Shown one piece after another: positions 21,152-41,171 of a DNA stretch of 60,738 bases. The notes beneath the pieces were generated by a model. It saw only the letters and a list, made by a program, of their open reading frames with translations. It did not search any database and had not been told where the DNA came from. The DNA is from Fonticula alba ATCC 38817 (lineage: Eukaryota; Protista; Nucleariida): the NCBI GenBank assembly GCA_000388065.2, contig KB932201.1. The stretch is one strand, 5' to 3'. The number at the start of each line of letters is the position of its first letter. Positions within the stretch are counted from its first letter, which is position 1. The translations under genes and the position numbers were made by a program.

Positions 21152-21390
21152 CGAAGGCGGCGGGCGAGGAGGAGGCAGATCGGTGGTCAGGGTGTCGAGG
21201 GGGTAGGGGGTGGGCGGGAGCAAGGAGGAGGAGAGAGGAAGAAGGAAGAGGGAGGAGAGGCGGTGGAGGTGGGAAGAGGGACTGTTGACAATCCCCCACC
21301 CGGAGGGCGACCAAGGTGCTGCCGTTCAAAAGACGAGTCCCAGAAACTGACCGTGTTAGACACTCTCCCCCACCCCCCCCCCCCCCCCCC

Positions 21391-21467
21391 GGTCTCTCTG
21401 TCCGCGCGCGCGCGCGCGCGCAATATCTGTCAATGCGAGTGTCCTTGAGTCTGTAGGGGGAAGACGG

Positions 21468-21509
<42 letters not shown>

Positions 21510-21580
21510 CTCTCTGTCCGCGCGCGCGCGCGCGCGCAATATCTGTCAATGCGAGTGCCCTGTGTTTGTTGGGGGGAAGC
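21391..21580. repeat. Tandem duplication, period about 116 bp: GGTCTCTCTGTCC(GC)9AATATCTGTCAATGCGAGTG separated by poly-C
   Basis: Copies start at 21391 and 21507. The first 51 bp are identical; the downstream part is similar but diverged. Confidence 0.9.
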
Positions 21581-24421
21581 CCCCCCCCAGGCATGCCCCC
21601 CCCCGCCCGTGATATATCGGTCGGTCCGATAACCTGGCTGAGCCGCTGGAGAAAGTGAGAGAGCGACGAAGAGTCCTTTGTTGTGCGCGAACATGGGCCA
21701 TTTTCGGTCCTGGGCGAGGGCTTTTTCGTCTCACCGCCCGCTGCCGGGACTTCCCACCCCCCGCCAAGAGCAAAAGACAAAGGTGACAGTCGACCGGTAG
21801 ATCTCCGTCCAACCCCGGGGGTGGGCGTTTTGGGCGTCCCCGCGAACACCGGTCATGTAAGAGGAGGGTGTGATGCACTCCGGTCACATGCTGTATTAGT
21901 TGGTGCTGGTGCTGAATCGTCTGCAAATGCAGCACTCTTCGATTTGTTCTGGGGATAGACCGTATAATTGTGGTCTATGGCCGGTGGGGAGACCTTAACT
22001 CTTTCGAGGACGGAACCGAGAGGCGAGAGCAGACATGCGGGCGGGCGGGCGGGCGGGCAAGGCATGCACGAAGAGAAAGTCTCGAATGAGAATGCTCGCT
22101 CCCACTCGAGGACTCCCTCCTCCTTTCCGGCGCTGTTCTTTCTCGGCACAGCTTTGGCATTTGACCAGGAGCACCCGGCATCGCCGCATACTGGAGGGAG
22201 GGGGGCGGCGACTGGCCGGCCGGCCGGCAAAGCCAGGGGGTGCACAGATGACCAGGTACCGTGGGCCGCGGCCCTTGAACAGCCCCCTTGTCTCGGAGGT
22301 GCCAGAGAAACTCCTATCCAACTCGGCCACCCGTGTGAGGCAGGGGCCTGCGACCAACTTCCGGGAACCTCTGGAGACAACCAATCATCGCGTTTGCTGG
22401 GTGTCAAATGTATCTCGCTCTCGGTGCCGATGATGGAGTAGCGAAGCAATAGGAGCGATGATTGTTTGGGGAGAGTTGACTTAGCGACATACGATTGGGC
22501 CATATGCGAGGATCGTGTGGCTTTTTACTGCTCGTCGCGAATCCCCCCTGGCCCGCATACCCACGTCAGCCTCTTGCGGAGGCGCTCCGCCAGTGAGGCG
22601 GACTGGTGGATATGTGCATTTCCATTTCCCCGCCCCCCCCCCCCCCCCCCCTTCCGTCGTCAGGCTCGCTGACTACCTCGCCATCGATGTGGAGCTGGGC
22701 CTCCATGCACGCGCGACGTTGGTGCCAGGAGGAACCGGGGTGCCGGGGAGCAGCCAGGTCCGCGCGATGGCTCGATTGTCTTTCCCCGGCGTGAACTCCT
22801 TCAGAAGCAGCTTCATGCACATTACCCCGCGTAATGCCCGCCGCTCTGTGGCCCTGGCCTCTTCCCGCCAATTCGTCTGACATCGCACATGCACCGGATG
22901 ACCGGGGTCGAGGATCCGGAAATGATCGGAAAGCCCTTCCTCAGAGGGCTTCGGAGATCTTCTCCCGGCGCTGCCAACGGCCTTGCCCAGTTGTTCCGAA
23001 TATGAAAATGGCGAGTACTTGCTGCGGGGTATCGGCGCCGGCGAGCATTGACCGGGCAGCCTGATGGCCGAGGCCCGGTCGACAAGCCTGCGGGGGCAGG
23101 GTCGCCGATTGTACCACCTGAACCATATATTTTGGGGGGAGAGAGAGAGGGGGGGGGCGGGAGGGGGCCCGCTCCTTGGTACGAAGGCCAGGGCCTCCTA
23201 CCGCCCCTTCAACCAGGCCCCAACTCCGGGGCGGGTCCGGTGTCGGTAGGACGTTGCCGGCTCTTCCCGGCATCGACCGTCTATCGGCCGGTGAAGGGGG
23301 AGGGGCTTCCACTCCGGGCTCAGCACAGACGGAGCCCGAGCAAGACGCCTCGGTCTCGGGGCATGATGCGAGGGCCCGGCCCCCCCCCCCCCCCCCCGGT
23401 GATGTGCGCCGCCAGAGTTGACCGTGGGATCGCCCAGCCAGCCCGAATGGCGGGGAGGGGGGCAGCCCAGCCATCGGCCGCGACCGGGGGCTTGGAGGCT
23501 CGTCCAGAAAGCTGGTCACGCCTGGATCACGCGCCGTAAAGAGGAAATTCCAGCCATCCCCTGCAATGGAAGCCCCTGCTTGGCGGGCCGTTGTCAGCCT
23601 TTCCACATGCGCACGCTGGCGGGCATGTATGGGTCTCATTAGAATGGTGGCTTTTTACAGCTTTGGCCCCTCTCTCCCCATCCCCGGAGGGAGCCTGGGA
23701 TTCCATGCTCCCGTCTTGTCCACCACGCCCCTGCCTGTCTCTGCCAGGGGAGGTGGCGAATGCATCGAGCTGCCAACGCTAGGGAGCGCCATACACGCGC
23801 CCCCCTCCGGAACGGGGGACCGTCACACGCAGATGGGAGGAGCGGGTCTTTCGCCAATCGGTCAATAGTGCGGCCGGGTGGCGCACACACGGGCAGGCTT
23901 CCCCACGCCCGGGCCCCTCCTTTCCCCGGGGGCCTGCCCGAGAGGCGACCTTCTCTTCCCGGCGGGGGACTTGACATATTTCCTCCCTGCCCCCCGAGAA
24001 GCCCTGCTGCCAGGCATGGGCGAAGTCCGCCGACCAAGGAATGCCCCCCCCCCTCGCCCCGCGGCGACGCCCCCTCCCCCCCCCCCCATGCCAGGGGTTC
24101 ACCCGGGTGCTGGCTTGACCGGTCGACCGGGCCAAAAGCCGCCCCGGGTGCCACGCTGATCGGCCCGGCGTCGGGCAGCACCTCCGCAGGTGGGATTTCC
24201 TAGGAAATGGAGGAATGTGTGTGTGTGTGTGCGCGCGCGTCCGGAGGCCCGCCCTCGGCCGGACATGGAGGCAGTGCGGGAAGGGGGTGGGACCCGGCGT
24301 GCGGTCCGCGCCAGGCAACACGGCCCGCTGTGTATGGCAAGGACGCTGGCCCTTGAGGCCGATCGGGGGGGGGTGGGTCTTTTTTTTACATTTTCGCCAA
24401 CAGGGCATAGTTGCCAGTCCG

Positions 24422-24463
<42 letters not shown>

Positions 24464-24712
24464 GAGATTGGGAAGTGTACCCGCGCGCCGAGGTGCCTGC
24501 CNNNNNNNNNNNNNNNNNNNNNNNNNNNNNNNNNNNNNNNNNNNNNNNNNNNNNNNNNNNNNNNNNNNNNNNNNNNNNNNNNNNNNNNNNNNNNNNNNNN
24601 NNNNNNCCCCCCCGCCGATGCCCCCTCCCCTCCCCAGTCATCCGTCCGCCCCGCAACGTTGCATTACCCTGGGCTCTCCAGACATTGACTTTTGTCCTGT
24701 GCACACTTCCAG

Positions 24713-25059
24713 CCTCGGCGGTTTCCGCGCTGGGTGGCTGCTCCCTCGCCGACCAGGAGAACCGCAGCAACAAGTACAAGAAGAACTGCGACACTGCCAA
24801 GGCCATTTGCGGGTCCACCTGCACTCGTCTGGTGTATGACATGAACAACTGCGTCTCCTCGGCCAGCTGCATCACCGCCATGTCCACGCATATGTTGGGC
24901 TGTCGTCTGGCTGACCCGAAGTCCCACGGCGCCAACATCGAGGTTGGTAAGGGGTCCTACAACTGCAACTCCGCCGGGTCGCTCTTCAACCAGCCGGCCG
25001 CCCTGGCCACCGGTGCCCTGGCCGTCCTCCTTGCCCTTGTCTCCTCCTATGCTCTGTAA
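24713..25059 (+). CDS. Small secreted 8-Cys protein with GPI-like C-terminal signal, paralog A (exon 2 only; signal-peptide exon probably in gap 24502-24606)
   Basis: Acceptor TTCCAG at 24707-24712. Frame VSALGGCSLADQENRSNKYKKNCD...YNCNSAGSLFNQPAALATGALAVLLALVSSYAL aligns without gaps to paralog B. Confidence 0.8.
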
Positions 25060-25399
25060 AGGGGAGGATGCTTGTTTTTTTTTTCCCCTCTCTCTCGCTC
25101 TCACATCGTGTCCCTCCTTTGGTGGCAGGGGAATACACCTTTTGCCGCGTCACACATGTCCCCTGTGCTTTGAAGGGAGAGGGAGCGCATTTCGTGAAAT
25201 GCGCTGTCTGCACATGGGGGGGGGGGGGGGGAACGAGGGGCGGTCGAGCCCCAGGCGTGGGGCATGAGCAGGAGGCCTCACGCACCTGGGCGATGTTCAG
25301 AAAGGCCTGGGCATGTCCTGCGCCTTGTGGTGGAGGCGAAGAAAAGCCCCCCCCCCCCTCCCCAAACAACAACCTGTTGTCCCAGAGAATGCGTGGGGG

Positions 25400-26740
25400 G
25401 TATCGGGCCTCCGGCACTGTGTTTGGCAGGGAGGGCGACCGAAGGAGGCAAGTCGGGGGACCTACCCCGAGGTGCGAACAACGAAGGGAGGTGCCTCCGG
25501 CACCCGGGGCTGTCCCAGGGCGGCGAAACTCGGAAAGCTTGACTGGCGATTTAAATCACGCCGTGGTTCCCGGCGTGTAGCAGGGTTCACACGGGTTAAG
25601 CCTAAGTCAAGTGAGTGAGGCTTGACGAAGGGCACCAGTGTGATCTGCCACCCGGTTAGTAACCTCTTGGCATGAAGGAGGGGACATACCAACCAGCGGT
25701 TCACGGTCGTCTGTTACCAGATGAGTCAGTAACTCGGCTTGAGACGAGTTAGTGGCAAGCGAAAATAGAAAGGAACTCGGATGTTAAAAAGGGTTCGAGA
25801 GGAAGCCTTAGAACAGGTGTTCGTCGGCCTAACTGGTGCTTCGGCTATACTTCCGTATACTCTTCGACACACAGCTGCTAAGGCTTTCGCTCTCAGGAGG
25901 CTCTCAACGAGAGTCCCCCTTTTTGACCTTTGGGCTCGGTCAGGGGTTGGAACTGAGAACCCCGCGGCTGGGCCCGCCCACCCGCGTATCTCCGTCCTCG
26001 GTCGAGCGTTTATGCCGCTCNNNNNNNNNNTGACGAAGGGTACCAGTGTGATCTGCCACCTGGTTAGTAACCTCTTGGCATGAAGGAGGGGACATACCAA
26101 CCAGCGGTTCACGGTCGTCTGTTACCAGATGAGTCAGTAACTCGGCTTGAGACGAGTTAGTGGCAAGCGAAAATAGAAAGGAACTCGGATGTTAAAAAGG
26201 GTTCGAGAGGAAGCCTTAGAACAGGTGTTCGTCGGCCTAACTGGTGCTTCGGCTATACTTCCGTATACTCTTCGACACACAGCTGCTAAGGCTTTCGCTC
26301 TCAGGAGGCTCTCAACGAGAGTCCCCCTTTTTGACCCTTGGGCTCGGTCAGGGGTTGAAACTGAGAACCCCGCGGCTGGGCCCGCCCACCCGCGTATCTC
26401 CGTCCTCGGTCGAGCGCTTATGCCGCTCGGCCTCGGCGGCCACCTGGCTGTTGTTCTACCCCGCATTCCTCTCCGAGGAATGCTGTTCTGGGATGCTATC
26501 ATTCCCACGATGTAACACGTGTGGCAATTCACTCACGTGTTGCTTCATCTATCGTTTACATGGGGATTCCACTACACGGCGGGACAGCAACACGCCCCGG
26601 CGAGTGATCACGCCGGAAGAAGGTCCAAAATTCCGCTATATGATTCTAGGGTCCCTGTTCGCCCGGCGTCTGCCTTGGCCCCGATCTTCCAAGCAGGGAT
26701 GAGGGCATGTATAGGGCCAATTTGGTGTGCAACGCGTTCC
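25400..26740. other. Hairpin-dense, microsatellite-free structured element of unknown class (candidate endogenised RNA element or large ncRNA)
   Basis: Consecutive perfect stems, e.g. 25453-58/25465-70, 25490-25504, 25606-11/25621-26, 25730-36/25745-51, 25846-50/25855-59, 25786-93/25917-24, 26463-71/26475-83, 26597-602/26611-16. Base composition is visibly more balanced than the flanks. Boundaries are approximate. Confidence 0.6.
25623..26428. repeat. 398-bp direct repeat (25623-26020 and 26031-26428) across a 10-N gap
   Basis: Copies differ at five positions: 25633/26041, 25653/26061, 25929/26337, 25950/26358, 26009/26417. Confidence 0.95.
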
Positions 26741-27772
26741 GATCTCCCTCCTCGCCCCCCCCCCCCCCCCCCGCGCCGCCCCGGGGGGGGGGGGGGGGGG
26801 CGTGGCTGGCAATAGGCGCGTGGCGGGACCGGGAAAAGGTGTTGGCGGGACTCTGCCGGCTTGCCGGTCCTTGGGAGCTCAAACACTGCCGCCGCCGCCG
26901 CCGCCGCCGCCGCCGCAAAGGAGGCCCACTCAGTCTTCAAGACACAGGCGTTTGTGATGTGGATGCTTTCGGAAGGTGAATATGTGCGCGTGCATGTGTG
27001 CGTGTGTGTGTGTGTGTGACCGAGGAAACGACCGGGCTCTTGGGCAGGAGTTGCCAACTAAGCCTTCCGGAAATAAGGCGCCCATTCCGTGGCAGCCCCC
27101 CCAGGGCTCATGCCTTTTTCGGTCGGGGATTGCTTGCGGCTGATGCCTGCGAAGAGAAGGTCAAAATCAAGGCTGCGAGAAGACCCTCTCCGGGCCCCTG
27201 GCTTATAAGAGGCCACACGGCGCGTGGGGTCTGGCTCTCCTCCCGCTCTGACCCGCGTGCGGCCCGGGGCTCCGGATCAAAATGCCTCCGAGTCTCAGGA
27301 ATGCTCGGCCATCCATCCCACGGGGTGTGGTCATTCCCCGGGCCACCCGGATACCGGGGCTCCGGGGCTGCGAGGAGGGGGAGATGAATCAGCTCTCGTT
27401 CAGTGATTGGTTTCTCCCCCATATGGGGATGCCCACAGTCAAGGATTCTCATCACCTCTGAGCTCCCTCCACTGCCAGCGAGTCCAACAAAAAAAAAATC
27501 TTGCCGACGCGCCGGCGCCCCGAGGTGGGGTCGAGCCCAGGCGGGGCGCTTTTTCCCGGCCTGCATCGGCTAGCACAGTCTCCCGGGACTCGGGTCCAGG
27601 TCCGAAGGAGGGCGGCCGTGGGCGATGGGGTCGCAGGCAAAACAAACGACACGCTATAAAGGACGCCCTGTCCTTGATTCCCAACACACGGAGAGGCAGC
27701 AACACACTTTCTCCCTGCACCTTCTCGGACCCCCTCTTGCTTCTCGCCGCTCTCGCTTGCCTCCTCGCCACC

Positions 27773-28317
27773 ATGCGCCGCTCTCAACTTGCCTCCTTCC
27801 TGGTCCTGCTCCTGCTCGCGGTCGCCAGTATGTTACCTGTCTCCTTCTCTCTCTCTCTCTCTCTCTCTCGGTCGTCTTGCTGTGGCGACTGCTCGCCTTC
27901 TTTGTCATTTCCCCTCCCGCTGGCACTGACTCCCCCCTCCCCCTCCCCGACCTTGCTCCTTCGCCTCCAGCCACCGGTGTCTCGGCTCTGGGTGGCTGCT
28001 CCGCCGCGGACCAGGAGAACCGCGACAACAAGTACAAGAAGAAGTGCGACACCGCGGACGCCGCCTGCGGTTCCACCTGCTCTCGTCTGGTGTACGACAA
28101 GAACAACTGCATCTCCTCGTCGACTTGCAACACGGCCATGAGCGTTCTCGTGCTGGCCTGCCGCCTGCATAACCCGAAGTCCCATGCTGCCAACATCCAG
28201 ATTGGAAAGGGCTCCTACAACTGCAACTCCGCCGGGTCGCTTTTCAACCAGCCGGCCGCCCTGGCCACCGGTGCCCTGGCCGTCCTCCTGGCTCTCGTGT
28301 CCTCTTATGCTCTCTAA
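27773..28317 (+). CDS. Small secreted 8-Cys protein with GPI-like C-terminal signal, paralog B
   Basis: Exon 1 (27773-27827) encodes the signal peptide MRRSQLASFLVLLLLAVA. Phase-1 intron 27828-27970 (GTATGT...CCAG). Exon 2 is 27971-28317, with 8 Cys and a hydrophobic tail. Confidence 0.85.
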
Positions 28318-30052
28318 AACGCCAGAGGGCCGGGCGTTCCTCTTGCCCCGCGCGCTTCCCTGGTCGGCGGGGGCTCGAAAGGACAATAGCAATAATAATG
28401 ATAATAATGGCCACCTCATCGCTGCTGTCACTTGCGAACCGATGGGGCCACACGCCCAGCGGTCACATCAGCAGGCCCGAAGCTGATGCTCGTGAAAGCA
28501 GGACGCTTTTCATGTGACGGGCCCCCGTCGCCCAGTGTCCGCCCTCGCGAATGGAGAGCGCCCACCAGAGGGGCATGTCTCTGGGGGGGGGTCTTCTCTC
28601 TGCGCGATCGTGAGCGCGTGTAGGTGAGATTAGGCTCTTCTGGCTGCGGGAGGTGCACTGCGGCAAAATGATGCCTTTCTTCCGGGGGAAGCTTTTCCGG
28701 GAGCCGCACGCCGCCTTGGCACGCGCAGGTGGCAGTCTCTTCGGGGAGGAGAGGGACTTCCGCCGGCCGGGCCTTTTTGTTACGCCGTCAGTTGAGGCAT
28801 TGCGGCGGATCCTCCAATGCAAGGTAACCCGCAATCTCCCATGTGATTTCGCAGCGCGACTCGCGAGGACTTGCTGTGCTCTGAATCTGTCTGCTCATTC
28901 AGATTCCCAGACAGATGTGTTCTGGGGGTTCGCGGCGGCCACCAGCTGTCCCGCATATATTCCAGACAAGCATGCGCGATGCCTTCGGGAATAGACATCG
29001 AGGAAGGGGGGGGGGGGCGACGGCGGTGCTCGCCGGTTTGTTTGGGCAGCCTTCCCGGGCGCATCAGTGTCCCCCACGCGCAGGGCTCTCATCTTGGATA
29101 AGCCTTCTTCCCTGACCTTCAGGCTGCGTCCGGGCGCCAGCATGTTCGGTGGCCATTTGCCCACCTCCTCGAAGGCGCTCCACATGTGGCCGCTCGGGGA
29201 TGTTCCCCGCCTGTGTGGTGGGTATCAGGCCAAGGCGGCTCGGCTGGAGGGGTCCCAGCGGGACGGCGTCCGGCGCAGGGGGAACAGCTCCCCCGAAGAA
29301 GAGTCTCGTGGATATGGCAGGATCACACGACCCAGCCCCACTTCCACCGGGCCCGTTCTGAAGCACATCCAACATGAGTGGTTAATGCGCACATTTTTAT
29401 TAAAATGGAGACCTCCTCGCCCCTCCTTGCACGTTGTCCAGTTTGCCAGGGTATCTCTCTCTGCCTCTCTTGCCGTCTTCTCTCGCCGCTCCTTCCACTC
29501 CTTCCTCCCCCATCCATGGACCGACCTTGGGTGGCCGCTCCAGCGTGGAGCCTTTCTTCATCATTGTCAGCGCTCAGGGCTGGCCTTTTGCCTAATGCGC
29601 GTGAAGATGCCCACTCGCAGACAGGGTGTTGTGCCCGGATATTTGTGAGAGGGGCGGAGAGCCAACCAAAAAAAAGTACAAAGCTGACCACGGTCCCCCG
29701 AGATCGCAAGGGGAGCGAAGCGTACTGAGCGCTTCTCCGAGTGTTGTGGTCTGCCTTTTTGCAGGGTGTCGGCGCGCGTTCTCCACGGCTGGCAAGCACT
29801 CCGGGCATGTTGACCTGCTTGGCGGGGGCGCTCGGTTCCCGGAGAAGGGTGGGACATCGGCTTTGTCGGAAGTTTTATTGGGTACAAGTGTGTTTGTATA
29901 TGAAAGAAGCAGGCCCCGCACGACCAGCTACGAGTGTACATGTATATGGGGGGGGGTCATAAAAAGAGAAGAGGGGCGCGGGAGGGTCACTTCGGGGAGA
30001 CGAGGGATGGGGGGGGGGGTGAAGTCATACGGAAGGCGACACATACGTGCGC

Positions 30053-33215: not shown

Positions 33216-33225
33216 NNNNNNNNNN

Positions 33226-33263
<38 letters not shown>

Positions 33264-36200
33264 AAGAGCAAGTGGTCGGTGATGGGGGGGGGGGGAGGGC
33301 GGAACAAGGGAGGGAGAGGGAGAGAGAGAGAGAGAGGGAAAAGAGGATGTGGGAGGCCATATCAGTGGGCGGAGTCGAGAGTCGGGGAAAGAGGAAGAGG
33401 GGGCCGGGAAGGAAAAGAAAGAAAGAAGGCAAGCCCGTGTATGCGCACCTTGTTCAGCTCTTCCATCTTCCCAGCCAGGGACACCTCCTCCCCGACCGCC
33501 GTATAGGCCAAGCGCTCCGAGGAGCCAAGGTTGCCAACCAGAGCCATGCCAGTGTTCAGGCCGATGCGCGACTCAATCAGAGGGTAGCCACGCTTTCGCC
33601 ACTGGGGCCGGAGAGCACGCAGGCGCTCATGCGATCGAAGGGCCGCCAAGCCAGCAAGGATGGCATGCTGCGGCGCATAGAGCGGCGCATTCCAGAAGGC
33701 CATCACCGCGTCGCCGATGTACTTGTCCACCACGCCGCCTCCCTCATGGACGACGGTCGACATCTCGTGCAGATAGTGGCTGATCAGGTCCACCAGTGAC
33801 TCGGGGGCCAGTTGCTCCGAGAGGCAGGTGAACCCGGCGATGTCGGAAAAGAAGATGGTCAATTCGACCGGAACCACCCCGGCAATGGCCTCGCTCTTGC
33901 TGCGCTGCAACAGGCGGACCACGTCTCGAGGGACGTATTTGCTGAAGGAGTTCAAGCCGCGGTCCATGGCATCCAGGGCGCTGCTCATGCGGATGAGCTC
34001 CTTGGTGCGGAAGTTCCGCATGATTGGGGGGGTGCGCTTGGGCTGCGATCATGGCCGCATGAGGGGGGTGAGTGGGCCGGTCACAAAGAAGGCGGAGAGA
34101 GAGGGGAAGGGGGGGGGGGGGAAGAAGCAAGAATGCCGCCTGGCGGGGCGGGAAAAGCAACGGAAGCGGCATGGGCCGAGGCAGGTGGGAAAATGGAAAC
34201 GCACCCCACTGGCATTTGTGAGCGTCGCAACAGCCACCATCTGCTGCGAAGCCGCGCGCAGATGCTCGGAGAAGATGTGCGACATGACGGCCGTCGTGAT
34301 GATGCACACCAGCAGGCATCCGAAGAACTGCCGGGAAGAGGGGTCAGGGCAGGACGACTGGGCGAGCTTTCGCGTGTTTGCATTTGGCCGGCTCCGTGCC
34401 TTTCCAGCGAAGGATCGAACGAAAGAGGAGAGGAGGGAGGACGGAAGGGTATCCTGACGTACCACCAGCGGGAGAGCCATGTAAAAGGTGTTCCGTTGGG
34501 TGACGAGGAAGGGCGCCTGGTGAACAATGGCCACCAGGGCAAATTCCAGACGCGGATTGCCTGAATCCATGATTCCCGGCCCACCGGCCCCGATGAGGAG
34601 CTCCTGCCCAGCGAAGACATGCACAAAGGGCCGTGCCTATCTCGCACGCATCGCCGGTGTCAGTGAAACAGCATGTATGGCCACCAAAGGTTGAGAAGAA
34701 GCGAGAGAGAGAGAGAGGGAGGAAGGGAGGGAGACCGAGAGAGAGAGAGAGAGAGAGGNNNNNNNNNNGAGAGAGAGAGAGAGAGAGGAAGGGAGGGAGA
34801 CCGAGAGAGAGAGAGAGAGAAAGAGAGAGCGAGCGAAGGAGGAAGGCAAAGAGGTGGAGGCACGAACGAGGAAAGGGAAAAGCATGACAACGCACGATGA
34901 TCATGAGGTCCTTCCCGGCGTGGGTAACATCCAGCAGGGTGTATGGCCCGAATTGGACCGCACGCTGCGGAGCTCCATGTTGAGGGGGCGCCCCTTCGAT
35001 GAATGCTTGCCATGACGCGAAGACACCGGTGGTGTTGCGACCGGAGCCCATGTCACCAACCATGGCGGTTGCCGTGTCGCGGACATCCTGATCGAAGTAC
35101 TCCTGGGGGGTAATCAGCCGCCAGAAGCGCGACGCACCGGGACCCAGGGCCGCGGTCGGCTCGGCTGGCGAGTCAAAGGCCCCGGTCGTGGGGTCTGGCG
35201 TGCGCCCATGCCACCGGAGCAGCAATTGCGGATCATTTGCCTCGGCAGCTGACGAGTCAGCCACAATATACCCCTGCTTGTCCACCAAGAAGAGCTTCAC
35301 GGAGCCCGGGGGCTGCGGCAAGGGGAAGGAAAGCCGGCCGGCGAGGGAAGCACAAGGACATGGCAAAGGCGCAGAGAGCCAGCCGATGAAGGGAGGCCGG
35401 GGATCGTGCAAACAGAAGTGATTAGAACCCCAACAGGGAGAGGGCGAGACGGATCGAGAGGCAAGAGGGATCCGCGAGTCGAGAGCGAGGGCCACCAAAG
35501 TGGCGGAAGTTGCGCACCGCCCCGAAAAGAAGTGTCGTCTCGGAGAGGATGCGCGACACCGAGTGCATGGGGAAATCCACACCAACCAAAACCCGACGCC
35601 AAGTGCCCAGCTCCCCGGCAGTTAGCAGCCCAGGATCCCCATGGCCGGGGGGGACCGACAAAGCCAGGCCACAGGTGAGCCCGGGCTCCGGGCTGAAACC
35701 CCCATAGACTGGGGTGCTGGTGCTGCTTGGATCCATGGCACCGGGGCCCACGCCGGCCTCCATGACGTATGGCTGGCCAAAGCCGGCCCAAGGCTCAGCT
35801 GCCATAGCCGGCGCATTTGCCAGGCTCTCGCGCTCTAGATTGGCCAGGGGCACAATCGATGTCCGGCGGGCGGGGGCCTGCTCAAGGGCAGACTGGCCCG
35901 AGCCTGCCGGCAGGTGAACCGTCGAGAGGGCATAGCTCGTCGGGCTCATGCCAACCGCCTTGCATTGCTCGTAATAGACGGGCGGAGGGTCATCAGAGGA
36001 GCCGGAGGACGATGGAGAGGAACCCGAGAAGGAGGCTGAGCCAGAGCAAGACGGTGAGCCTGGAGAGGAAAGGGAGTCCGAGGCAGGGGAGGAATCTGAC
36101 AAGGAGGCTGATCCCGGTGAGGAGGCCGACCCCGGCGAGGAGGCCGACCCCGGCGAGGAGGCCGACCCCGGCGAGGAGGNNNNNNNNNNNNNNNNNNNNN

Positions 36201-37724
36201 NNNNNNNNNNNNNNNNNNNNNNNNNNNNNNNNNNNNNNNNNNNNNNNNNNNNNNNNNNNNNNNNNNNNNNNNNNNNNNNNNNNNNNNNNNNNNNNNNNNN
36301 NNNNNNNNNNNNNNNNNNNGAGGAGGCCGACCCCGGCGAGGAGGCCGACCCCGGCGAGGAGGCCGACCCCGGCGAGGAGGGAGAGGAATCTGAAGAGGGG
36401 ATCGAGCTCGAGGAGGTGGAAGATATCCCAGAGGCAGAGGCAGAGATCAGTGATGAGGCTGACCCTGATCCTGAGGCTGACCCGGTGTATTCACCGCACT
36501 CCGGCTTCACGATCAGACGGGCGATTCGCGCCACACCGCCAGGCAGTCCAGGTGGCACCGGCTGGCCGGCATCTGAAAGGTGGGCCAGCGCATAGGATGG
36601 CGGATCGGCTCGTGACCGAAGCACAAATGCCGGCATGTCCGGCAGAGAGGCAATCTCATTGAAGCCCCATTGGCCGAGGAAGACTCGGCGCACGCCGGCA
36701 AAGGCGGCGCTTGCCAGATCGATGGCAAATGCCTCCCGAAGGTAGCCATCCCAGGAGAGGCGTCGATCATTGGCGAATGTGGCTTGGATGTCTCCCGGAG
36801 CCGAGGTCGGCCCCTCCACAGTACGAGCAGCGCCCATGCCGACCGGGGAAAAGTCCCTTTCGAGGTCGGGGTCCTTGAGCAATGCCGAAACCGAATGGTC
36901 CGGCCCTGTAACCGTGCGCAGCAGTGATGATGCCCATGCCAAGGAAAGTTCCGAATCCGGGTCAGCCCCAGGAACCAAGCCAGTGGTCAGGGCAATGCCA
37001 TGGGCGGCAGCCGCCCGACGGCCGACAGCCGTGAGCACATCTTCCAGTGTGGACATGGCATGCGTCAGCTGGCTGGTGCCCACTTGCTCAAGTGAAATCG
37101 AGGCAAAGCGCTGGGGGCCAAATCGCCGCAGGGGGAGGAGGGGAGGGGCGGGTAAATATCTCGCCTGGGGAGAGGCATGCAAGGAGGGGATGCCAGCATG
37201 TGGGGTACCTCGGCCTCGATCACACACACCGAGGTGATGATGGCCATGCACACGGCGATGACAGTTACATTCACCGTCAGCATGAGACAGCGTAGCGAGC
37301 AGACCAGGCGAAAGAAGGGAGGCCCGGTGCGTCGCTGTGGGCTGGGCGCGGTGCCAGGCACCCCGCCTTCCGACCCATCCGTGGTTGTGGCTGTGGGTTC
37401 CTGGGAAAGGAGAGACCCGCCGCCTCCATGTCTTTCGAGGTATGTGATGTGTCAGCTGCAAGACGATGATTCAAGGCGAAGAGAGGGCGAGAAAGAGAGG
37501 GAGACAGGGGGGGGGGGGGAGAGAGAGAACATATGTGGAAATGTCGGGCGCACGTACGAGGGGAGGCGCCAAACGGCTGTCCGACTCTGAGCCCGCTCTA
37601 GAGCCAGTCGAGATGGAGTAGGTCGAAGGCGATGCGGCGAGGCCGGCGACGTGGGTGCGACCTGGCTGGCTGCCAGTGAGGACTGTGAGGCATCTCGAGC
37701 TTGCTGGCCAAACTGTCGTGACAT
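31830..37724 (-). CDS. Membrane-bound class III nucleotide (adenylate) cyclase of bacterial class IIIb type: TM - extracellular Cache-like region - TM - HAMP-like - cyclase - TPR-like - disordered tail
   Basis: Catalytic exon: ELTIFFSDIAGFTCLSE...VVDKYIGDAVMAFWNAP...RIGLNTGMALVGNLGSSERLAYTAVG. Next exon: YGTQILITESTY...RPVDRIQVAG...IYELL...FTQFEAGQYAEALEAF. TM segments near 37210-37290 and 34270-34330; KLFLVDKQGYIVADS is Cache-like. Both ends of the model are uncertain. Confidence 0.85.
36102..36380 (-). repeat. 18-bp coding minisatellite encoding (PGSASS)n in the cyclase ectodomain, spanning a gap
   Basis: GAGGAGGCCGACCCCGGC units on both sides of gap 36180-36319. Confidence 0.9.
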
Positions 37725-38394: not shown

Positions 38395-38689
38395 TTACCG
38401 GCTATCACGCTGAGGGGGATGGTGGTGGTTCGGGTCGCCGCTCCAGCTCGGGTGTCCGGGCGACTGGTGCGGCGCTGGCCCCGAGTGCGAGGAGTGATAC
38501 TGGTGCGGCGATGGCGCAAAATGCTGGGATGGGTGTGGTGAGAGCGGCGCCGGCGCCGGTGCCGATGGCTGCTGGTACAGTTGCACTTGCGGGTGTTGGT
38601 GCTGCTGCTGTTGTGCCAGCAGCGTCGGCAGCTGTGTCGGATGGGGATAAAAGTGCGCCACCGAGGGCGGGGGCTGGTAGTGGAAGCGG

Positions 38690-38725
<36 letters not shown>

Positions 38726-38755
38726 TGTTGCTGCTGCTGTTGTTGCTGCTGTTGT

Positions 38756-38787
<32 letters not shown>

Positions 38788-41171
38788 CTGTTGCTGTTGC
38801 TGCTGTTGCTGCTGTCGCTGCTGCTGTCGCTGCTGCTGCTGCTGGCGCCACAGAAGTGAAGAGCCGGCAGGGGAAGGGCTTCGCGCCATCGAGCCGGCCG
38901 GTGAAAGGGCCCCAGGACCAGGGGAGACCGAGGCTGCCGCGGCGGTCGCAGCTGCCACGGCCGCCACCGCCTGTGGATCTACCGGCTCTAGGGCCTGGTA
39001 GAAGACACGCTGAAAGGTGAGCGGCGAGTAGGATGGAGCCACGGGGGACGGGGAGAACAGCGGCCCGGACACCGTGGCCGGCGAAAGATGCTGATGATAC
39101 AGGGGGTAATGCGCCCAGGTCATGTTGCCAGCACCGGACGACGGAGGCCTGGCCCCGGGGAGGGGCGACCCGGTGGTGGTGTTCATGACTGCAGTGGTGG
39201 CAGCTGCCGTTGCCGCGGCGGCAGCTGCCATCGCCGCGGCAGCGGCAGCACCCGACGACCCGCCAAACCCAGACAGGTGAGGGTACAGATGTGCGAAGGG
39301 CCCATAGTTGTGGAAGGGCGAGATCATGTCCGACGAGGTGACTGGCAGCTGCGGGGGAGCCGGGGTCCGGAGCTCTCCGGTGCCGGGATGCACCGGGGTG
39401 CTGGTATATACGCCGGGCGAGCCGCCCGCCAGCATGCCCAGAGCGGTGTCCTGCCCAGGGGGAGCCGGGGACAGCAGGTGCAGCAGACCGCCCCCGGTGA
39501 GGGACGGCGCATGCTCCATCTGGGGATGATGCAAGAGCGACTGATGATGCGGGGTGGCTGTCGTCGTCGTCGGCGGCGGCGGCGGACCGGCCGGCGTTGT
39601 AGCCGCTCCACCTTGAGGTGACTGGTAATACCCGGACAGGGGTGACGGGTGTGCTGGCTGGCCATGTGCCGTGGCCGGAACGCCGGGCGCCGGCCCGGGG
39701 GCCGAGGCCGAAGAGGGCCGCGCCCCGGTGAAGGGCGACTTCCCCGGAGGCCCATGGGGAACGGGCGACTCGGCCGTGGTCGACTCAGCCGAAGCCCCCG
39801 GCCCGAAGGGGGCCGGGCCACGTGAGGCACCGGCGGTGGCCGGGCTACCCATCTCGCCGGCAGGCATGCTGGACACCCGCCCGGCAAAGTCAAAGAGGTT
39901 GGACATGGACTGGGAGGCCAGGGCCGCGGCCACCGGACGCCCGGACAGGTCCACCACCCCGGGCGACGAGGGACCAGGCCCACGGTCAGCCCCACCACCG
40001 ATGGGCTGGCTGGCCGTGGACAGGGGCCCATGCGCCAAAGTGGAAGTGGACATCGAGGAGGGCGGCCGGATGGTTGCCTGTGAAGAGCGATCGGCACTTG
40101 TGTGGTGACCATGATGGCCGGCTCCGGCCCCGGGGGCTGAGGCCATCGGCGAGGAGAGCCCCGGTGTCCCGCCCCCGGGACCGAAGGCCGCAGGGGTCAG
40201 GGTGGCCGAGGCGTCCGGCGTGGAAAGACCGACATTCGCCCCGCCGGGCGGACGCGGCGGCAGGGGCAGGCCACTGACAGACAGGGAGCTTGAAGACCGG
40301 GAGCGCTTGGCTACTGGGGGCTGACTGACCAGCTCGGCCTTCGCCATGGTTTCTTGGGGCGCTTGCGAGTGAGGCGGCAACTGCTCGCCCTGGGGGGGCG
40401 GAGCGGCGCGCGACCGCGTGCTGGTGGCCTTCGGTCGCGAGGCCCGGGGCTTCTTGGCCCCGGAATCGGCCGCCAGTTCGGATATCGACTCGGCGGCCAG
40501 CCCCGGGACCGTGCCCCCATTCGGCATCGGCTGCTTGTCGGTGGACAAGGTACTCCCGGCTGCGGGAGCCTTCGGTTGGTGGGAGTGCGGCCCGTCGGCC
40601 GGGGCCCGAGCGCGGTCGGCGGTCGGCGAGCTTGGTGGCGGGGTTGCCGGGTAATTGGGCACCTCGATCATGGGTGGCTGTGCAAAGCCAACTGCCTGAC
40701 GCTGGGCCAGAAACTGGAACATCCGATCAATCTCCGTGTAGTTGTTGTTGTTTCGGGCAAAGCGCCGATGCTCATTGTTGGCGAAATGCTGCGATGCAGT
40801 CACCCACACGGTCAGGAGTCTGTGATTGGGGCAGGCAAAGGGGGGAAGTGGACAAAGGAAGATGGCCGGGCGGGGAATGGGGGGGGGGGGGAGGGGGAAG
40901 AGGGAGGGGGGAAGAGCGAGCGAAGGAGAGGAGCACGAAATGAAGAAGAACGCACCCGCTCGACATCGGAGAAGGCACGCTGACAGCATTCACAATATCC
41001 CTGGGCGGGGCCGAGCTTCCGCGCGGCCTGAATTCGATCTGCGGTTGAGAGAGCCAGGAACCGCTGGTAATTCCGGTCATTCTCCTGGCGTTGAAGTCTG
41101 AGGGTTGGTTGTTCGCAGAGACGACGTGAGTACATTCGTGCGTGCGTGTGCGCGCGTGCGTGTGTGTGCGC

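Follow-up and report, generated by a model that had tools for sequence, protein, structure and literature searches.

A hairpin-rich, low-G+C non-coding stretch between two orphan genes of Fonticula alba: a candidate structured host RNA

Fonticula alba is a slime-mould-like protist, sister to fungi, and stands for the earliest-branching lineage of Holomycota. In fungi, telomerase RNAs measure ~1–2 kb, and clade-restricted non-coding RNAs escape detection by Rfam beyond their clade. We analysed a window of F. alba nuclear DNA (60,738 nt, the whole stretch of sequence under study) and describe here a segment within it that appears to behave most like these large clade-restricted structured ncRNAs of fungi. 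In common with fungal-type lineage-specific RNAs (telomerase RNAs, oversized snRNAs), it is ~1 kb long, single copy in the window and non-coding, and it shares with them a G+C content below background, many local stem-loops and the lack of an Rfam match. It differs from them in that no defining motif was recognised, and a TTAGGG-type template is absent. Since the segment showed none of the features that define such families, we file it under no family.

Long structured 3′ UTRs provide a second comparison. The stretch likewise lies downstream of a gene (H696_00963) on the same strand, and its best hairpin cluster favours that strand. However, it starts ~300 nt past the stop codon, beyond G- and C-runs, the UTR would here have four times the length of the coding sequence, and the paralogous gene H696_00964 has no such structure downstream. 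Solo LTRs and non-autonomous transposon relics share with the stretch its size of 0.9 kb, its non-coding character, its foreign composition and an internal block that confuses the assembler; in contrast to them, the stretch has no terminal repeats, no other copy in 60 kb and no target-site duplication visible by eye. The likeness to endogenised RNA replicons and viroid-like RNAs is confined to the hairpin-rich appearance of the stretch. Copies of RNA replicons are marked by RdRp or capsid remnants, ribozymes and unit-length multimers, and the stretch is without any of these.

The locus is situated on scaffold KB932201.1 (4.77 Mb) of assembly GCA_000388065.2, in the 2.7-kb spacer between H696_00963 and H696_00964, where the public annotation is without any feature. 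The initial annotation of this DNA, which was made by a model from the letters, had placed a foreign-looking element between two Cys-rich genes, and these are indeed the neighbours. The bounds of the stretch and the flanking genes are as follows.

24207–25059, + strand: H696_00963, a 118-aa Cys-rich orphan gene, upstream neighbour (public annotation; the ORF ends at 25059).
25346–25363, no strand: C-rich homopolymer tract, left bound of the clean stretch.
25364–26754, no strand: the whole low-G+C stretch without low-complexity sequence, as assembled (gap and both copies of a repeated block included); no period-3 signal.
26755–26800, no strand: C18 and then G18 runs, right bound of the stretch.
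27773–28317, + strand: H696_00964, a 133-aa paralogue of H696_00963, downstream neighbour (public annotation).

A 230-aa ORF at 27625–28317 shows 100% identity to H696_00964. Each of the two genes is the sole homologue of the other among 5.8 billion proteins, no Pfam domain was found in either, and neither further family members nor contigs carrying them were found beyond the two in the window. By sequence comparison, H696_00963 and H696_00964 are thus tandem paralogues and true orphans. Only the last exon can be aligned between them (83% DNA identity over 353 nt). In both genes this exon is Cys-rich and ends in a hydrophobic, GPI-anchor-like tail.

The G+C content of the stretch is 0.55–0.57, compared with a window mean of 0.655 ± 0.036, below which it lies by 2.3–2.8 sd; no other tile in the window is as low. 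The stretch contains neither homopolymers of at least 6 nt nor microsatellites, whereas every other spacer in the window has them, and the balanced composition without G/C runs or microsatellites that had been noted at first sight is therefore confirmed. It is also the only long low-complexity-free run in the window without clear 3-base periodicity, with a period-3 ratio of 1.2–2.3 versus 7.5–9.9 in the neighbouring exons.

Protein searches agree with this picture. For seven to nine ORFs of the stretch, not even a threshold of E ≤ 10 produced a match in Pfam, NCBIfam or PHROGs, and ten ORFs (longest 80–170 aa) were absent from a collection of 15 billion proteins by exact look-up. A k-mer search of 5.8 billion proteins with one ORF and a phmmer search of 1.84 billion representatives with the 132-aa − strand ORF both returned no homologue, and we found no similarity between the stretch and the flanking genes or the rest of the window. 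A coding gene or pseudogene is therefore rejected: there is no period-3 signal, no family match and no homologue of the searched ORFs. A 108-aa + strand ORF (26189–26515), in which the motif LRHT recalls tyrosine recombinases, was dropped as a candidate as it is without profile support.

Close to its middle, the stretch is interrupted by a short gap, and a block of 398 nt is found on both sides of it with 98.7% identity. Both copies abut the gap.

25623–26020, no strand: left copy of the 398-nt block, ending exactly at the gap.
26021–26030, no strand: 10-N assembly gap; two other 10-N gaps are likewise flanked by the same sequence.
26031–26428, no strand: right copy of the 398-nt block, beginning exactly at the gap and differing from the left copy by 5 transitions.

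The five differences between the copies (25633–26009 versus 26041–26417) are all transitions and occur in both directions; the first and the last of them are situated 11 and 12 nt from the block ends. The letters across the gap are not simply continuous, since the contig on the right begins again 398 nt earlier in the sequence. As the region is non-coding, the gap at 26021–26030 affects no reading frame.

The block is probably one segment that was written twice, with its variant versions left unmerged. We favour this interpretation because the gap sits exactly at the copy junction, whereas the junction of a genuine duplication, being unique sequence, should assemble easily, and because the outermost differences lie near the block ends, as they would for the limits of a variant “bubble”. 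A true two-copy tandem is a rather unlikely alternative, and the little probability that is left falls to a block that is present also at other places in the genome. A tandem of more than two units is unlikely because a positive gap estimate would be needed.

If the block was written twice, the element is probably ~0.93 kb in size and not 1.3 kb as assembled. The size of ~1.3 kb given in the initial annotation thus describes the assembly correctly, but it probably overstates the element by the 398 nt repeated around the gap. The de-duplicated figures are 933 nt and a G+C content of 0.574, taken from 25400–26020 plus 26429–26740. Six of the 14 stems quoted at the time, together with the closing helix and the UUCG loop, had been counted doubly. 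Misassembly, which had been named as one way in which the element could prove spurious, is thus likely in this one respect, the block probably having been written twice at the gap; each half is still gap-free with its own gene.

Should the two copies be alleles, heterozygosity at this locus would be ~1.3%, a notable value because F. alba is usually treated as clonal.

The window derives from a draft assembly, with 14 gaps along its 60 kb. Three of them are 10 N long, and each of the three has the same sequence on both flanks; the two at 33216–33225 and 34759–34768 lie in (GT)n and (GA)n runs, with the repeat on both sides. A 61-nt stretch is 100% identical on the two flanks of the 140-N gap at 36180–36319. 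Ten Ns look like a floor value written at repeat-induced breaks, and gaps in this assembly often mark unresolved repeats whose sequence is written on both sides. The practical lesson is that the flanks of a 10-N gap can repeat one sequence, with the consequence that feature sizes and stem counts are inflated.

We located all 14 quoted stems at their places, and the closing helix AAAAAGGG/CCCTTTTT (A5G3/C3T5) indeed pairs 25786–93 with 25917–24; the CUUCGG loop is present at 25839. The statement that short stems tile the element almost end to end is an overstatement, as perfect hairpins cover 37% of the bases. Nevertheless, the hairpins are in excess. Counting perfect stems with loops of 3–12 nt, and the repeat only once, we found 18 hairpins of at least 5 bp, 9 of at least 6 bp and 4 of at least 7 bp, versus 8.2 ± 2.9, 2.0 ± 1.3 and 0.5 ± 0.7, respectively, in 300 dinucleotide shuffles. 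Per 600 nt, perfect hairpins of at least 6 bp reach a density at the top end of the window range, tied with that of tile 28401–29000, where the MFE z-score is near 0 despite the matching density.

MFE z-scores were computed in 150-nt windows on both strands along the whole 60-kb window. Inside the element the mean z is −2.7 on the + strand and −2.4 on the − strand, compared with −0.3 (sd 1.3) outside it, and no 800-nt running mean along the window is lower than the one reached within the element. The comparison with dinucleotide shuffles that had been proposed as a check thus speaks for the element, with the exception of its margins (25400–25500 and 26560–26740), where folding is no better than in shuffles. 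The excess of local structure is real and unique within the 60-kb window. Its main features are the following.

25500–26560, + strand: structured core, whose windows outdo shuffles in folding (z roughly −2 to −7), with z at about −2.5 to −4 over the core and −6.4 in its five-hairpin cluster.
25786–25924, + strand: branched domain of 139 nt, with the A5G3/C3T5 helix closing it; repeated at 26194–26332.
26408–26545, + strand: five consecutive hairpins (26408–32, 26434–53, 26463–83, 26489–507 and 26509–45), the strongest folding signal.
26560–26740, no strand: right margin, of the same composition and unstructured.

The contiguous 710 nt at 26031–26740 have z-scores of −3.7 (+) and −3.0 (−), and the 151 nt at 25780–25930, which hold the 139-nt domain, score −3.9 (+) and −3.8 (−). 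The 166 nt at 26395–26560, which hold the five-hairpin cluster, reach −6.4 on the + strand versus −3.7 on the − strand, an advantage that is due to several stems using G-U pairs. The strand preference is inconsistent across the stretch: the + strand is preferred at 26395–26560, and the − strand folds slightly better at 25400–25700. Most stems are perfect Watson–Crick palindromes and fold equally on either strand. The two copies of the 398-nt block differ at 5 sites only and are therefore uninformative with respect to covariation.

The most extreme z-scores of the window (−6.6 and −7.8) are found at 21360–21560, where two occurrences of a ~60-nt unit, composed of a C-run, GGTCTCTCTGTCC, (GC)n and an AT-containing tail, lie ~116 nt apart and adjoin C23 and C37 runs. 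They are purely due to low-complexity G/C pairing. A second region of low z, 38500–39350, is explained by repeat pairing of a long CTG/TTG-rich run and not by a structured element; this run (38690–38830; CAG/CAA on the − strand) is apparently poly-Q coding.

As stems of this kind need not act in RNA, we considered an ordinary spacer in which inverted repeats exist at the DNA level, promoter/regulatory or neutral, and no RNA structure is formed. The palindromes would then have arisen by template-switch mutation or serve as protein-binding sites. This would fit the mostly perfect stems and the similar z-scores on both strands, and one other tile of the window matches the density of perfect hairpins. 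Furthermore, the largest hairpin of the cluster contains a CACGTG palindrome (E-box/G-box type) in each arm (26514–26541, 12 nt apart), and the paired motifs could equally be protein-binding sites in DNA. However, the matching tile has a z-score near 0, whereas the stretch is negative over ~1 kb. The + strand advantage at 26395–26560 needs G-U pairs, which are meaningless in duplex DNA, and neutral spacer in this genome gathers G/C runs and microsatellites, of which the stretch has none. We therefore regard an explanation at the DNA level as unlikely, while giving it some weight.

To place the stretch among known RNAs, we scanned the whole 60-kb window with Rfam 15 (cmscan, both strands, gathering threshold) and obtained 0 matches; at E ≤ 10, three sub-ranges of the stretch gave only miRNA and lncRNA noise. 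Ribozymes, rRNA, snRNA, SRP RNA, RNase P/MRP and telomerase RNA were not detected by cmscan on either strand, and ARAGORN reported 0 tRNAs, in agreement with the earlier inspection by eye, which had likewise seen no rRNA, snRNA, SRP, RNase P/MRP, tRNA or ribozyme. A literature search on Fonticula ncRNAs, telomeres or endogenous viruses found nothing.

The stretch could in principle represent the telomerase RNA of nucleariids. An 8-mer template for TTAGGG-type telomere repeats was found on neither strand. The template scan covered 16 generic telomere-repeat units (4–10 nt), and the 10-nt word TAAGCCTAAG at 25597–25606, which equals 1.67 units of a 6-nt repeat and would fit a TTAGGC-type telomere, is within chance. 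The telomerase-RNA idea has a slim chance of being correct and is only a lead.

The initial annotation had put forward a reverse-transcribed copy of an RNA replicon (levi/narna/ourmia-like, satellite or viroid-like). In its general look, with dense local hairpins and a foreign-looking composition, the stretch does recall such RNAs, and the repeated block superficially recalls a multimer. None of the specific searches bears this out. Remnants of an RdRp, coat or maturation protein were found neither with Pfam, NCBIfam and PHROGs (E ≤ 10) nor by tblastn of three ORFs against IMG/VR, which revealed no relative. Exact-word scans of IMG/VR contigs and a search of a phage collection gave no match either, so that the comparison with virus databases that had been recommended is negative for these two collections. 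No ribozyme family was detected and the 398-nt block is not a head-to-tail multimer: the unique parts to its left (223 nt) and right (312 nt) match nothing in the block. A multimer of a circular unit is rejected because these unique flanks do not continue the repeated block. Moreover, ~0.93 kb is far too short for a Lenarviricota genome. An endogenised cDNA derived from an RNA replicon of any of these types, whether non-coding or degraded, is consequently very improbable.

The draft state of the assembly, with its 14 gaps, and a G+C content unlike that of the host might also point to an assembly chimera or a contaminant, for example from a food bacterium. Our analysis argues strongly against this. 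No gap separates the left half from the last exon of H696_00963 or the right half from H696_00964, and the stretch is not a contaminant because each half shares one contig with a Fonticula gene. There is no match to E. coli genomes, plasmids or phages, and no coding density, unlike in bacterial DNA. When two words of 21–22 nt were scanned exactly against 185,579 prokaryote species, only two chance matches were found, which represent a 21-nt palindrome in gut MAGs and show no extension. Contamination, raised as a concern together with the first description, is hence not borne out by the prokaryote, plasmid and phage scans, and of all explanations considered here it is the least credible.

A relic of inserted DNA deserves more attention. 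The stretch would in this case be a fragment of a mobile element or a non-autonomous copy (e.g., a solo LTR), or DNA or cDNA captured at a break between C-rich tracts, and it would be without present function. Its composition would reflect recent arrival and its hairpins would stem from the source element. Several observations are in line with such an origin. The stretch is an outlier in G+C (2.3–2.8 sd low) with C-runs on both sides, it is missing from the flanks of the other paralogue, where the 353-nt exon alone aligns between the gene copies, and the 398-nt block broke the assembly, as would a sequence present elsewhere in the genome.

On the other hand, the hallmarks of an inserted element are absent. 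Terminal repeats, whether inverted or direct, are limited to the poly-C tracts, the best other end-to-end local alignments being equal to shuffled controls, and no inverted repeat spans the ends except for G-run/C-run pairs. A target-site duplication, for which a search had been suggested, was not seen by eye. None of the frames carries a transposase, RT or integrase signal, and a second copy was found neither within the 60-kb window nor in overlapping loci of the same scaffold. No relative is present in the viral, metagenome, prokaryote, phage and plasmid DNA collections searched, and two 22-mers from the stretch had no match in metagenomes. Finally, the genome of F. alba is reported to be very poor in transposable elements, with 0.36% repeats (bioRxiv 10.64898/2026.06.24.734286), which lowers the prior for a transposon. 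Taken together, inserted DNA is a possible source of the stretch, albeit one that we would not put first.

We tentatively prefer an unannotated structured host RNA read from the + strand, either a lineage-specific ncRNA or a long 3′ UTR of H696_00963. Four lines of evidence favour a host RNA. First, the folding excess over shuffles is sustained over ~1 kb and is unique in the 60-kb window. Second, the 3′ cluster has a G-U-dependent advantage on the + strand, which is the strand of both genes. Third, the low G+C content without G/C runs or microsatellites fits constraint. Fourth, the stretch is non-coding, as judged by the missing period-3 signal, family and homologue. The “novel host ncRNA” that the initial annotation offered as its alternative is compatible with the excess folding, the low G+C content and the absent coding signal.

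According to this model, a host non-coding segment of ~0.93 kb between the tandem paralogues would be expressed as a structured + strand RNA. This RNA would either stand on its own as a lineage-specific ncRNA or make up the long 3′ UTR of the upstream, same-strand gene H696_00963, and its short stem-loops might serve as protein-binding, stability or processing elements. Transcription, strand and function are all inferred here.

Some observations count against a host RNA. Perfect palindromes on both strands and the preference of the left part for the − strand fit DNA-level inverted repeats, too. The public annotation is blank at this position, no Rfam family was matched even at E ≤ 10, and no homologue of the stretch was found in any collection searched. 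A 3′ UTR of 1.5 kb would be long for a 118-aa gene. An independent functional structured ncRNA gene of ~0.9 kb, from a so far undescribed family, is in itself improbable, although less so than the telomerase version of it. The host-RNA and inserted-DNA readings are close; the former is slightly ahead and the latter nearly as likely.

The ncRNA repertoire of F. alba, a key outgroup of the fungi, is essentially undescribed. If the stretch proves to be a relic of inserted DNA, it would be an unusual vestige, as next to no mobile or foreign DNA is reported from this genome. If it is transcribed, as our preferred interpretation implies, it would be among the first large structured ncRNAs noted in this organism, and it would provide a handle on the expression of two orphan, surface-protein-like genes.
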